From: Dimorphilus gyrociliatus
Taxonomy: Eukaryota; Animalia; Annelida
DNA: 64,000 nucleotides
Assembly (NCBI GenBank): GCA_904063045.1
Contig: CAJFCJ010000019.1
Location: 186,001 to 250,000 of the forward strand
Reading direction: 5' to 3'
Position 1 is the stretch's first letter. Each line of letters opens with the position of its first letter. The notes beneath the pieces are model-generated. The model had not been told where the DNA came from and made no database searches. It worked only from the letters and a program-made list of their open reading frames with translations. Below, piece by piece: positions 23,559-30,993 of this stretch. Made by a program: the position numbers and the translations under genes.

Positions 23559-25065
23559 ATGCCTCCATCAACTGCCGAATGTTCGTTAGATATTCGGGGC
23601 ACGGAGTATTCGGTAGGAAGCTCGATTGATGATGACTGTTTACATCTCGTAGTTGAAGATGTGGTAACTAATGATGTTTGGAAAGCGTCTTTTAACACTA
23701 ATATAATCGAGGAAATAACTCGACGTACCGGCAATTTTAAGCAATTTTCAGTTTTTTGTAGTATGTTAACATCAGCTATTGAGGGTAGTAGCGATTCTGT
23801 TGATATAGATATAATGACGTATGAAGACCTAGAACATTTAAGAAAGCGTTCCAAAGGTAAAAATGGACCTGGACCAAAACAGTCTCAAAACAAGCGTTAC
23901 CTTATTTTAATATATACCGCAGAATTTGATAGAATTCACTATCCTCTGCAATTGCAGCACGAGGGAAAATCAGAAAATAAAAACGTACATAAAACAATAT
24001 CAAAATTGAGAGAAGATATCATAACTTTACAAAAGAGATGCAAAATTTTGCAAACTAGAAATTCTCAGCTGGAGGATGAAATTTCCCAACAAGTGGAATC
24101 AAATCCTAGTCAGCAGACTGCACTTATGAAAACAGCTTTAAGGAACCTGGAAGAACAAAGTTCGCAAGCCAAAGCAAAGTATCAGAGAGCTGCTCAACGT
24201 CGAAAGACGGAAATAGGTCGATTACGAACTGAAAACGAAGAGCTAAAAGCAAGCGAAAGAAATTTAAAAGCCAAAGTCAAAAGTTTAACAAATGAATTGG
24301 CCATTTATAAAAGAAGAATAGGAGGCCCTGGATCAGGACGATCATCTTACAGATCAAATAATCTATCTGGAACATCATCGCTATTATCGGACCATTCCAG
24401 AAATCGTAGTAGAAGTTTGTCAAATAGTAGGAATCATTCACTCACGTCGGATGCATCTAAGAATTCGCGTGTAAGAAATGTTAGAAGTAGGACACCATCA
24501 CCAGGTCTGCCAAAACCAAGATTTGACCCAACTGCTTACATTAAAGAAAAAGAAAGAAAAAAACGTGAATTGGACATTAGAAGAAAACGAAGAAATCATA
24601 TAAGTTCCAGATCACCATCAATATCACCTAGATCTGTTACTTCGAACGATTCGAGACATAGTTAGTTTTATAACAGTTTTCAACTTATTAACTTATTAAA
24701 CTTTTTTTGTTTTAGGCCGTTCACGATATGGTAATCTTTCTGATTCATCGAGAAATTCAAAATTATCTAGAACACGATACTCTTCTTTTGATTCACTTGA
24801 TAGTGACACAGATCTAGATAAAAGAAGGACAATTCGGAAAACTAGTTTGGATAGAAGGTCTAACTCTTCCAAAAATATCAAGGCAAAACCAAATTTAGAT
24901 AGTTCACAAGATTCTATTGATATCCCAAGATCGCGCTTTGATAGATTTCGCCAAAAAGGAGCTGCTGATAACTTTTTTGACGAACGATCAGCCGAAATTA
25001 GTGAAATAGATGCGCGTTTAAATCGCCTGCAGGAATTTATGAAGGATCATCTAGAGTTAACTTAA
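23559..25065 (+). CDS. CCDC61: Coiled-coil domain-containing protein 61 (SAS-6 paralogue, VFL3); exons 23559-24660 and 24716-25065
   Basis: Head domain IEEITRRTGNFKQFSVFCSML and KRYLILIYTAEFDRIHYPL, coiled coil ending SLTNELAIYKR, RFDPTAYIKEK motif, C-terminal EIDARLNRLQEFMK. The 55-nt intron joins the frames. Confidence 0.92.
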
Positions 25066-25317: not shown

Positions 25318-28300
25318 ATGACCGAAAATCAGGGAATGCAACATCTAATCCCAGTTGTCAACAAACTGCAAGATGCCTTTGCTTCATTAGGTGTTCCGTT
25401 ATCTCTTGATTTACCACAAATAGCTGTCGTTGGCAGTCAAAGCGCTGGAAAGAGTTCAGTTTTGGAAAATTTTGTGGGCAAGTAAGTAAATAACGCTGTC
25501 TAGTGACATTTGAAAAAATATCAACTCTCATTGTCTCATTTTATGGAGATGAACGATAATTTAAATGATATCGAATTTTCGGTGTAATGTCAGGCCACTC
25601 CATAATGATATTGATTCGTTCTCAAAGCGTATTATTCGCGGAATAGATAAGAACTAACTTGGTGGGGTGATTCTTGTTTTTACCAGGTCAACTATTTGTT
25701 GACAATTTCCTCGATTACTGGAAGAGAACACCCAGTAATTAAGTTTTAGGGGGCGGTTTTTTTCTTTCGCGCCAAGTTCTGATCTATATAATTTTCATTT
25801 CATTTTCAACAGGGACTTTTTGCCTCGTGGTAGTGGAATCGTAACTCGGAGACCTTTAATCCTGCAGCTCATCAATAGTAATACTGGTAAGTTGAATGTT
25901 TATAATAAATAGTCATATGCTATGTTTTTGAAGACATGTTTATAAATTTTATTAGTACAATTATGTAATTAGGTCTATTATATACTAACAACAGCACTTG
26001 TTATTCATATAGTTTCATTTTCTTATTAATTTGTACCAGGTAGTTAATTTACCAATTTGGTAGCTAAGAACGTAACTAGTAGCGCTCAGGGTTGCTTTAT
26101 CGATTATTACTAGCATTGAGAAGTACATATAAGGGCTTCAATCTATAACATATATGTTTCAACTTCTCGGATTTGCTATTGGTAAAATGATATTTCTCTT
26201 TTTTCCTTACAGAATATGCTGAATTTTTACACTGTAAAGGACGCATTTTCTCGGACTTTGATCAGGTTCGAGCTGAAATCGAAGCTGAAACAGATCGCAT
26301 TACAGGAACAAATAAGGGGATTTCAAATGTTCCAATTAACCTTCGTGTATATTCACCACACGTTCTTAATCTTACACTCATCGATCTTCCGGGTCTTACG
26401 AAAGTACCTGTAGGTGATCAACCTCACGACATTGAACAGCAAATTAGGAATATGCTTTTGGAATTTATTAATCGGGAAAGTTGCTTAATTTTGGCTGTTT
26501 CTCCAGCGAATACTGATCTTGCAAATTCAGATGCGCTGAAAATTGCCAAAGAAGTAGACCCTCAAGGTGTTCGGACAATCGGAGTTGTGACAAAATTGGA
26601 TTTGATGGATGAAGGAACTGACGCAAGAGATATTCTGGAAAACAAAACACTACCGTTACGAAGGGGTTATATTGGAGTTGTCAATAGATCTCAAAAGGAT
26701 ATTGACGGACGTAAAGACATAAAGGCAGCTCTATCTTCTGAGCGAAAATTCTTCTTGTCTCATCCAGCTTATAGACATATTGCTGATAAATTAGGAACAC
26801 CTTATTTACAGAAAACTCTCAATCAACAATTGACTAACCATATTCGGGACACACTACCTGGTCTTCGAAGCAAGTTACAAGCTCAATTTCTATCGATGGA
26901 AAGAGACGTGGAAGAATACAAGAACTTTAGTCCCAATGATCCGACTATAAAAACTAAGGCCATGATGCAAATGACTACAGAATTTGGTGGTGATTTCGAG
27001 AAGTCAATTGAAGGAACAGGATCCGAAATTTCAACGAATGAACTTTCCGGTGGAGCAAAGATCAATCGGATATTTCATGAGAGATTTCCTTTTGAACTGG
27101 TAAAAATGGAGTGTGACGAGAAAGAATTGCGCCGTGAAATTACTTATGCTATTAAAAACATCCATGGTATACGTACGGGTTTATTTACACCAGATATGGC
27201 ATTCGAAACCATCGTTAAGAGACAAATCGAAAAACTAAAGGAGCCATCCTTAAAATGCGTTGACATGGTAGTTTCTGAGCTAAGTAACGTCATTCAGAGG
27301 TGTACTGACAAAATGAATCGTTATCCTGTACTCCGCGAAGAGACAGAAAGAATAGTAACCATGAAGGTCCGAGAATGCGAGATGAATACCAAGAATCAGT
27401 TAATCCTTATGGTCAACATTCAATTATCTTATATGAATACCAATCATGAAGATTTTATTGGATTTGCCAAGTAAACTATTTTATAATATATTTGTTTTTG
27501 ATCTAACTAACTGAATATACTTTACAACAGCGCTCAACAAAAGTCGGAAACGTCTTCAAAACGTAAACTTGGAAATCAAGTCATCCGAAAAGGTTGGCTC
27601 TCTCTCCATAATGTTTCCTTCATAAAGGGAGGCTCGAAAGAATTTTGGTTTGTTCTTTCTGCCGAAACTTTGGCATGGTATAAGGATGAAGAAGAGAAAG
27701 AGAAGAAATATATGTTACCATTAGACAACTTAAAAGTATATAAACTTTCGCTAGAAATTAGATTTGTAGCTTTTTTTTATTATTAATCTTTTATAATTTC
27801 AGGTCAGAGACATTGAATCGGGCTTTATGTCTCGTTCTCATAAATTTGCTTTGTTTTCCACCGACACCCGTAACGTCTATAAAGACTATAAGCAGTTAGA
27901 ATTAGGAGCAGAGTCCCAGGATGACGTTGATAGCTGGAAAGCGTCTTTCCTAAGAGCTGGAGTATATCCTGAACGGAATACGGATGTAGAGAGAGAATCT
28001 GTAAGTTAAGATTTTGTTTTACGCATCCTTCTGGAGTTCATAATCTTGCTATTAATACTTTATTTTACAATTTCTTTATTTTTTACAGAGTAATTATGTA
28101 CGTTTTATTTGAATATTTACATCTGTTTTAAGTAGTATCTAACTCTGCACAGAGATTTATACATATATAGATATGTATATATATATATATATATATATAA
28201 AACATATATAATTAGTTATTAAAAAAAAAATTAGAGGCAGCCTATATATTATTTTTTTAAACAATTAATAACGATATTCTTTGTTTAATTAATTCAAAAA

Positions 28301-30993
28301 AAAAAGATTATTTATTTTTTACTCACAATCTTTTTTCTTCCACATGAAATCTATCAATATAAAAAAAATTTACCGTTTTAAAGCTAGTAAGTTTCGTACT
28401 GATGGCTATATCACAATTATTATTTTATTCTTTTTTTTTTGCTGAGTGATTTTCTCATTGTCAGAGTGAATTAAAAACAAAAACAATATCAACATTTTAT
28501 AAAATATAAATCTTTCGAAAAATTTCTTTTTTTTTTTTTTTCCCCCAAATAATCCAAAAAAAAGATTAATTTAATGGAATGTTCTTTAGTTTTTATTTAT
28601 TTATTTATTTACCTATTACTAAATTTTGTCAGTGTAGCTCACAATAAACATTATCATTTACCCTGCTCTCTCTGTCAAGAAAAAAAAAAAGAAAAAGAAA
28701 GAAATATTTTTATATTTAATGATAATAATAATAATAATATCAATGGCAACAACAAAACAGAATAGCTTCCGCTATTTCAGCTTTCATATATTTTAATGTA
28801 TAATTATTAAAAACAAAAAAAAAACAATACTTAAAAAAAAAACAATGATTAATTAATTGTTCCAAGCAGGCAATTAAAGTCAGCTTATGTGGCTTACATG
28901 TTTTGGAAACTAAAAAGTAGTTAAAATATTCAATTTTGACTATTAAAAAAATATCTATTATTTCTATTTTCATTTATTTTTATTTTGTTAAACAATTTTT
29001 TTTTTAAATAATAAATTAACAGCGAGGTGAAGAATTAGGATCAACCGATCCTCAACTAGAAAGACAAGTTGAAACTATTAGAAATCTTGTGGACAGTTAT
29101 TTAAAAATTATTCATAAAACTGTTCGAGATTTGGTCCCAAAGACTGTGATGTACATGATAATAATGGCAGTAAGTGTAATAATTTTTATTTCCTCGTCGA
29201 CAGGGTTCGCGTGACTCAGAAATGGGTTCCATCGACCCACAATTAGAAAGACAGGTGGAAACAATCAGGAATCTCGTCGACTCTTACATGCAAATAGTGA
29301 ATAAGACCCAACGGGATCTTGTTCCCAAAGCCGTTATGCATATGATAATTAATGAAGTGAGACTTTCGATCTAAGACATTTAGTTCACTTTTTTTACGTT
29401 AGAAAAATTTTTATTAAGCTTATCTGGCTCTTGGTTTAAATGTCGTATTCTTTTACTATATTTTACTCCTAGCTTTCCTTACGCATGAAATATATTTACA
29501 CTAGCAATGTAAACTTTTGGGATTTGCACTACTTTTTACTATGGTTGGGATTTCCAGGAAAAAAATATAATTTAGGCTTAGTCTAACTTTTTGTTAGTTT
29601 CAACCTGTAGTGGTTATGCTCCCTGTCGACTTGTTAACTTTGTTAATGTTTCATCACTGTATTTTTTTTCCAAAGACAAAAAGCAATTTTATACTTTTCT
29701 TTTACAGTTAAAGGCATTTATTTCAAAGGAACTATTAGCCCACCTTTATTCATCAGGAGATCAGGTAAAAATGAGATAAGCAACTTGAATGTTTTTTAAC
29801 ATATTAGCAATCTACGTCTTAGAATAATCTGATGGAGGAAAGTCCAGAAGAAGCTCAAAAACGAGAGGATACTCTTCGAATGTATCAGGCAACTAAGGTG
29901 ATTTATCTGAAAACTTTTATAAAAAATATATTCAGACTAACTAATAATTAATTACACTCGTAATAGGAAGCGTTAAAAATCATTTCGGAAGTCTCGACAC
30001 AAACAGTATCGACTCCATTGCCACCACCGGTAAATGACGAATGGCTGGCAAATAGCGGATCAAATTCTTCGTAAGTACAGAATAGACAAAAAAAAGAAAG
30101 AGTTAGATAAGATTTTCTATGCATCGAAAACTAGTAAATCGTAGACTTGATATTGTAGTTCTTTAAACGTTCTTTTTTTATGGTTTTTTTTGTCTCTGTT
30201 TACTACTTTATTTCGTATATCGATGAATTATTTTGCACGAGCACGTATATTGCATGCAGACCTCATTATCACCATAACCATGAAATTTCGAACGGTCCTG
30301 GATCGTGGTCACATATGCATAGTAAGCCTGCAGTTCCAGCAAATAAACCTCCACACGGGTAAGTTCGTTGTGACTTTGAAACACTAGATGATTGATAGGT
30401 AGAATTCTGCTTGTCTGAACTCCGTTGATTTTAGTGACTAAAACTTGGAATGACGAATGATATTTTCTAACAATTTTTTCGTCTTTTTTTTTTTATTGCA
30501 ACCGATTTTACAGGCAAGCTAAGTATGTATTTCTGTCATCTAGACTCTGTAGTTTTTAGTTTGATTGAAGTTATTCTTTCCATTATCTTTCTTTTCCTTG
30601 AAAATCTTTGTTGGAGAAATTTTCCTTCTATTTACACTTCAATTTGTCATGTGGAAACATTTTGTTTTTTTTTGTTAGAATGAACAGTCGTGGACCGCCG
30701 TCAGCTTCTACCATGCGAAGTGCACCTGCACCCCCTTCAGCGAGACCCGCTGTAGGGGCACCTTCAAGACCAGCGCCATCACGACCAGCTCCAAGTCCAA
30801 CCCCAGTTCAGCAAGGAGGTGGTCTACCACCTCCTCTAATACCTCAGTAATACAAATTATACTTTGTACTTGAAATAATTTTATACTTTTAACACTTTTT
30901 CTCTTGTTTATTTCTTATAGACGTCCTGTTCCTGGAGGAGCGGCGCCGCCACCAGTGCCAGGCCGACCGAGTATGCCATCTAGACCGCAGTAA
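25318..30993 (+). CDS. DNM: Classical dynamin (GTPase, middle, PH, GED, PRD). Exons 25318-25481, 25813-25886, 26213-27470, 27531-27735, 27803-28000, [28089-28097], 29023-29169 or 29204-29356, 29708-29764, 29823-29897, 29967-30070, [30260-30358], [30514-30522], 30679-30846, 30921-30993
   Basis: [56 protein letters not shown] domain [33 protein letters not shown], Pro-rich tail. All splice phases were checked and are consistent. Confidence 0.96.
28164..28210. repeat. (TA)n microsatellite within an AT-rich low-complexity dynamin intron
   Basis: atatatatatatatatatat run; flanking poly-A/poly-T tracts through about 29000. Confidence 0.75.

Follow-up and report, generated by a model that had tools for sequence, protein, structure and literature searches.

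The stalk of dynamin decides how the protein builds the collar that severs vesicles from membranes. We analysed a 64,000-nucleotide (nt) stretch of the genome of the annelid Dimorphilus gyrociliatus (contig CAJFCJ010000019.1, positions 186,001 to 250,000 of the forward strand; the window, from whose first base all positions below are counted), in which a classical dynamin gene carries one stalk-helix exon as a tandem duplicate. As judged from sequence, the two copies, exon A and exon B, very probably form a mutually exclusive pair, with one copy in each mRNA. We put at roughly three in four the probability that the duplicates are kept exclusive by a steric block, imposed by an intron of only 34 nt between them, and that the choice between them is biased by a long-range RNA helix. 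The exons and spacer concerned are the following.

27803-28000, + strand: upstream constitutive exon encoding the end of the PH domain, with the donor gtaagt at 28001 (tblastn with Ptychodera dynamin, 72%).
29023-29169, + strand: exon A, version 1 of the first GED (stalk α4) helix; 147 nt, 49 codons, phase 0/0.
29170-29203, + strand: A-B spacer of 34 nt, holding the A donor gtaagt and the polypyrimidine tract, candidate branch point and acceptor of exon B.
29204-29356, + strand: exon B, version 2 of the first GED (stalk α4) helix; 153 nt, 51 codons, phase 0/0.
29708-29764, + strand: downstream constitutive exon, from sequence reading and tblastn with hemichordate dynamin.

The gene occupies ~25.3-31 kilobases (kb) of the window on the + strand. 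Pfam Dynamin_N, Dynamin_M (E 7e-103) and GED each match a separate exon, and the exons are collinear with those of hemichordate dynamin, the PH exons showing 72% identity by tblastn with the Ptychodera protein. The single 58-amino-acid (aa) PH exon, taken alone, went unscored by Pfam, and the proline-rich C-terminal tail was seen by direct reading as the reading frame 30608-30850. Exons A and B match Pfam GED (PF02212) over profile positions 2-37 (E 1.7e-10) and 2-39 (E 4.2e-11), respectively. An AG lies just 5' of exon A (29021-22) and of exon B (29202-03), and the donors gtaagt, at 29170, and gtgaga, at 29357, follow the two exons. The original prediction, an earlier reading of this stretch, had described both as phase 0/0 exons with good AG/GT sites and open frames; our own reading of the sequence bears this out, and the translations of the two exons are identical to those given there. 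By tblastn, the GED-helix exon is present in two copies only within the 64-kb window, and exact look-ups of the window's open reading frames over exons A and B returned no match on record. The exon corresponds to human DNM1 residues ~644-692, with PDB dynamin-1 chains matching exon B at 644-691. These residues belong to the stalk portion of GED (helix α4), ending just before K694, and not to the helix of the bundle signalling element (BSE). The earlier suggestion that a GED pair may tune stalk and BSE assembly needs correcting on one point: the exon covers the stalk part of GED (DNM1 644-692, up to I690) and does not encode the BSE helix.

Both copies are retained in a related species, represented by a 7.5-kb Logan contig (L088, run SRR23372228) that was reached via the cluster of the middle-domain exon and is 77.7% identical to the window in DNA over the locus. 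For the large constitutive dynamin exon, the nonsynonymous divergence (dN) between the two is 0.013 and the synonymous divergence (dS) 0.91. The orthologue of exon A (L088:6390-6536) is identical at 46 of 49 aa, with dN 0.027 and dS 0.34, and that of exon B (L088:6571-6723) at all 51, with dN 0 and 12 synonymous differences. In DNA, exon A and exon B are each 92% identical to L088, with splice sites and frames intact in both, and the introns around the pair are 41-63% identical, with indels. The original prediction had proposed comparing both exons with a related genome by dN/dS; both prove intact, with ratios of ~0.08 (A) and 0 (B), and the case for selection on the two copies, previously made from the A/B comparison, now has orthologues at dS ~0.9 besides. 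Both copies are thus under selection at the protein level. The spacer is 34 nt long in L088 also, and 30 of its 34 bases are identical, against an intron background of 55% (P 3e-5).

The two exons of the window are 73% identical in protein (36/49 aa) and share 97 of 147 nt. Synonymous changes separate 25 of the 36 codons that encode the same amino acid, with dS saturated and dN ~0.2, which argues against a long-dead copy. The isoforms would differ at 13 positions, nine of them inside the helix (DNM1 670, 671, 673, 674, 677, 684, 687, 691 and 692). Six of these nine (670, 674, 677, 684, 687 and 691) show a heptad-like spacing and should therefore share one face of the helix. The nine differences adjoin I690 and K694, which are assembly-mutant sites. 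The A and B isoforms may differ in function.

Exons A and B are adjacent and homologous, similar in length and equal in phase, with splice sites on both. The original prediction that the 34-nt spacer is shorter than the gene's other introns holds: the other small introns (27471-27530, 27736-27802, 29765-29822 and 29898-29966) span 58-69 nt, and those around the pair are long (1022 nt upstream, 351 nt downstream). Every adenosine in the spacer lies either ≤19 nt from the A donor or ≤3 nt from the B acceptor, so that U1 and U2 should be unable to sit on the spacer together, and since the intron is only 34 nt long, any B branch point would lie no more than ~20 nt from the A donor. An intron of this kind would block joint inclusion of A and B sterically. 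In exons 2 and 3 of α-tropomyosin, the downstream branch point is too close to the upstream donor for joint splicing; the worm pair is similar in having the B branch point near the A donor, and differs in that the whole intron is 34 nt and would, by its length, be unspliceable. The GTAAT near the A donor, put forward earlier as the branch point, reads CTATT in L088, and the conserved candidate is instead UAAU, at spacer positions 11-14. Each of the two exons preserves the frame, so nonsense-mediated decay has no means of enforcing a choice between them. From frame retention, spacer geometry and the conserved length of the spacer we infer exclusivity, which would make the worm pair one of the mutually exclusive exon pairs, a class already known.

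A second conserved feature of the locus is a stretch of the downstream intron that is complementary to the acceptor and 5' part of exon B. The two arms of the predicted helix are listed here.

29195-29272, + strand: arm 1, running from the spacer end across the exon B acceptor (GUCGACAG/GG, the slash marking the start of the exon) into the 5' part of exon B (RNAduplex and folds).
29587-29634, + strand: arm 2, a conserved 48-nt island in the downstream intron and the best partner among intron windows.

RNAduplex gave -42.3 kcal/mol for the two arms in the window. Shuffles of the island averaged -26.9, with 1 of 500 reaching the observed energy (z -4.1 to -4.4), and none of 120 whole-intron dinucleotide shuffles did so (mean -26.7, standard deviation 3.1). 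Arm 2 ranks best of all intron windows, at -42 versus -27 for the next, and folding of 29150-29720 yields the helix in the minimum free energy structure as well as in the centroid structure. Within the island, 29609-29631 pairs with the B acceptor region, where GUCGACAG/GG pairs with CCCUGUCGAC through 10 perfect and conserved base pairs (bp), and 29595-29608 has two possible partners, the QVET-coding bases of exon B (29251-29262) and those of exon A (29064-29077). Rfam returned no match within 27900-29800.

The complementary island and its partner are both conserved. The island is identical to L088 at 42 of 48 positions versus the 55% intron background (P 1e-6), and in L088 it is again the top partner, with a duplex energy of -42.2 kcal/mol. 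Among the 37 predicted pairs, 34 are unchanged between the window and L088, one G-C has become G-U and two peripheral pairs are broken. On the exon side, the 5' 93 nt of exon B show two differences to L088 (91/93 identical), and 2 of 29 same-amino-acid codons there have changed, versus 35% in the constitutive exon (P 0.0006); the 3' 60 nt carry 10 differences, all synonymous, which is a normal rate. The alternative pairing of 29595-29608 with exon A at 29064-29077 matches at 13 of 14 positions in the window and at 14 of 14 in L088. A single C-to-U change keeps a G-U pair with exon B and turns an A.C mismatch into an A-U pair with exon A.

Such a helix would join the end of the spacer, the 3' splice site of exon B and the 5' half of that exon to an island ~390 nt downstream. 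Once formed, it would mask the B acceptor and loop exon B out, and it would draw together the A donor and the acceptor of the next exon, which lie 26 nt before and ~77 nt after the stem, respectively. In the direction that we propose, a formed helix would favour A and its absence would favour B. Thus a conserved RNA helix looping out exon B is predicted to bias exon choice, probably toward exon A when formed. The docking and selector sites of Dscam and 14-3-3 ζ and the intronic FGFR2 IIIb/IIIc stem offer parallels: there too, an intron holds a conserved stretch complementary to sequence at the variable exons, and pairing would loop one of the variants out. The worm locus differs from them in having two variants only, in placing one arm on the exon B acceptor together with coding bases and in the weakness of the exon A pairing, and it shows no covariation in the two species compared.

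Several observations weigh against this account. D. gyrociliatus introns are short, with a median of 66 bp (PMC7854359), and a 34-nt intron might be spliced in such a species, which we consider unlikely. A word search with exon A, made in a protein collection within the searchable size range, found no RNA-derived fragment of the species or its close relatives. The helix shows no compensatory double substitution among its 37 pairs in the two species, that is, conservation without covariation. In the window the island pairs only weakly with exon A (z -1.6, not significant alone), and no convincing counterpart of the helix was found in the hemichordate Glandiceps (L087).

Were the 34-nt intron removed, both exons would be co-included and the dynamin would carry a doubled helix. 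The two lengths are multiples of 3 and would leave the frame open, and the species is adapted to short introns; however, 34 nt is about half of the gene's next shortest intron (58 nt), the spacer adenosines crowd the donor or the acceptor as described, and a doubled helix occurs in none of the ~850-aa dynamins seen, the hemichordate isoforms described below carrying one version or the other. We regard co-inclusion as very improbable. Slightly less probable again is that one exon is an unused relic, a pseudo-exon, and that the other alone is spliced in, for which the single copy in many other invertebrate contigs might speak. Each exon, however, is 92% identical to L088 where introns are ~55% identical, at dS ~0.9, with open frames, intact splice sites and the low dN/dS values given above, and the protein is still 73% identical between copies that are synonymously saturated. 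That the duplication is an assembly artefact is effectively refuted, as 50 of 147 bases separate the copies and the independent assembly of another species (L088) has the same layout.

A different alternative grants that the exons are alternative and has the island work without base-pairing, either as a protein-bound splicing enhancer or silencer or as the remains, kept by selection, of an exon fragment in inverted orientation, its complementarity being incidental. Such a role would fit the absence of any double compensatory change, the resemblance of the island's reverse complement to a shortened exon copy (GTCGACAGGG...ACAGGTTGAAACTA) and the fact that the clearest hemichordate counterpart stands just moderately above background. 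It sits less easily with the conservation of both arms far beyond their surroundings and with a duplex energy held at -42 in both species, and the sole substitution in the core of the helix is the G-C to G-U change, which at the same time makes an A-U pair from A.C with exon A. We consider a non-pairing island possible but doubtful, and favour the combination of a steric block with pairing over the B acceptor.

The same exon is duplicated in two enteropneust hemichordates, which by analogy offers a precedent for its alternative use. The RefSeq models of Glandiceps talaboti (XP_077986535-38) and Ptychodera flava (XP_070581871-75), which are automatic gene models and surfaced in a search with a Saccoglossus partial dynamin whose matches were mostly mammalian dynamin-1, contain either version of this exon and never both; in each species, the two versions are the sole difference between X2/X4 and X1/X3. 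In the hemichordate genomes the two exons stand in tandem inside introns of 2.6-6.8 kb, and both versions are under purifying selection between Glandiceps and Ptychodera. The worm and hemichordate pairs thus share the exon, its phase-0 boundaries, two tandem copies, a short spacer and, in the models, one-or-other use, and they differ in spacer length (34 nt in the worm versus 84 and 91 nt in the hemichordates) and in descent. In an exon tree of 42 columns, the two hemichordate versions are sisters (support 98/95), which points to a duplication of their own, apart from that in the worm. We considered one ancient origin common to worm and hemichordates and rejected it, the hemichordate versions being each other's closest relatives. 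The worm duplication appears to be at least as old as the common ancestor of the window and L088, and the 42-column tree resolves little else.

Tandem pairs of this exon are also found in three metagenome contigs of one invertebrate group (L007, L018 and L022), with spacers of 330-520 nt, GT donors on both copies and conservation of both copies across the three contigs. In these (L007:2973-3586, L018:3362-4135, L022:3545-4135), a divergent upstream GED-helix exon (…NLVESYM.IINKT.RD…) is followed by a canonical downstream exon. Most other contigs, including a large Joint Genome Institute (JGI) metagenome family, have a single copy within the available flank. Positions at which the versions differ recur across lineages, at DNM1 670, 673, 684 and 687. 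Some invertebrates with a single dynamin may therefore possess an analogous candidate switch, in a stalk helix different from that used by vertebrates, which would have arisen more than once.

Intronic sequence complementary to an acceptor was also seen in Ptychodera flava, where two stretches of L006, 33700-33767 (downstream) and 29522-29582 (upstream), show complementarity to the sequence around the 3' splice site of the distal GED exon, version 2 (UGUGAUAUAG/CACGGUGG). Their duplex energies are -56.6 and -44.5 kcal/mol. In a scan of 923 intron windows of 53 nt they are the top two outliers, with scores of -46.0 and -40.0 (z -5.1 and -3.8), so that against a fair background the downstream stretch is a moderate outlier only (z -5.1, next -3.8). 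Glandiceps (L087) has no clear counterpart of the two stretches. We rejected the idea that the Ptychodera downstream intron contains a full antisense copy of the version 2 exon (-99 kcal/mol), as blastn found no such repeat.

The best-known alternative pair in dynamin is exon 10a/10b of DNM1 and DNM2, a mutually exclusive middle-domain pair that is reported as absent from invertebrate dynamin (Boumil 2010, PMC2916854). In the same study, invertebrates are stated to have one dynamin isoform only, and the mouse DNM1 pair is described as important for synaptic function, with the fitful mutation in one of the alternative exons (PMC2916854). Like exon 10a/10b, the worm exons are tandem, ~46-50 codons long and encode one helical segment of the stalk, with about a quarter of residues differing (PMC2916854). 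In contrast to the vertebrate pair, which lies in the middle domain around residue 408, the worm pair covers GED residues 644-692. Since a different exon is involved and the vertebrate pair is absent from invertebrates, the origins are independent, which agrees with the original prediction that the worm pair is distinct from the vertebrate one. That prediction also considered an independent invention in the worm; the pair is indeed unrelated to that of vertebrates, but it is not unique to the worm, given the hemichordate RefSeq isoforms and the tandem pair in a further taxon. In the literature searched we found no paper on the GED exon pair or on the hemichordate isoforms.

The long intron upstream of exon A holds further conserved elements.

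28089-28097, + strand: candidate optional micro-exon of 9 nt (AGTAATTAT, Ser-Asn-Tyr) between the PH and GED exons, with a good acceptor (ttttttacag) on one side and the donor gtacgt on the other.
28328-28458, + strand: conserved island of the 1022-nt upstream intron, from the window/L088 alignment, with an AG..GTAAGT motif.
28837-28899, + strand: second conserved island of the upstream intron, from the same alignment.

The candidate micro-exon sits in an island (28072-28122) that is ≥87.5% identical to L088, where both splice sites are kept and the candidate reads AATAATTAT; its end agrees with an alternative donor at 28097 given in the original prediction. The 28328-28458 island contains AAAGCTAGTAAGT, which resembles a 5' splice site. 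The rest of the 1022-nt intron aligns poorly with L088. Neither the 28328-28458 nor the 28837-28899 island showed significant pairing with the exons or with the downstream island, the duplex of 28837-28899 with the middle of exon A reaching z -2.7 only, and neither has an Rfam match.

Just upstream of dynamin, a 368-aa open frame lies at 23559-24665 on the + strand. Its orthologues in L088 and in a second, different relative (L005, Logan ERR14224706) match Pfam CCDC61_N and CCDC61_coil; the exact product of this CCDC61-like frame was without a record in the assembly index. L005 was reached with the 340-aa middle-domain exon as query and is 79.6% identical to the window in DNA over the locus, its contig stopping before the GED exons. 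Both relatives would suit comparative work on other parts of this genome.

Beyond the worm, we tentatively propose, at slightly less than even odds, that a two-state switch of the dynamin stalk has arisen in animals more than once through duplication of a stalk-helix exon, in the middle domain in vertebrates and in GED helix α4 in dinophilid-type annelids, in enteropneust hemichordates and in one or more other invertebrate groups, and that in the worm a conserved RNA helix sets the switch by looping out an exon and masking the distal 3' splice site. What makes the pair worth following is this recurrent origin in one dynamin stalk helix together with a predicted RNA stem, conserved in both species, that covers the distal acceptor. 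The 34-nt spacer and the conserved, perfect 10-bp stem over a 3' splice site make a small and tractable model of exon choice, and, should the proposal be true, the locus would be a compact natural system for exon choice controlled by RNA structure. With six of their nine helix differences in heptad-like spacing, the A and B isoforms would lend themselves to a direct comparison of assembly and GTPase stimulation. An animal with a single dynamin would then make two assembly "flavours" of the protein, as vertebrates do with DNM1a/b.

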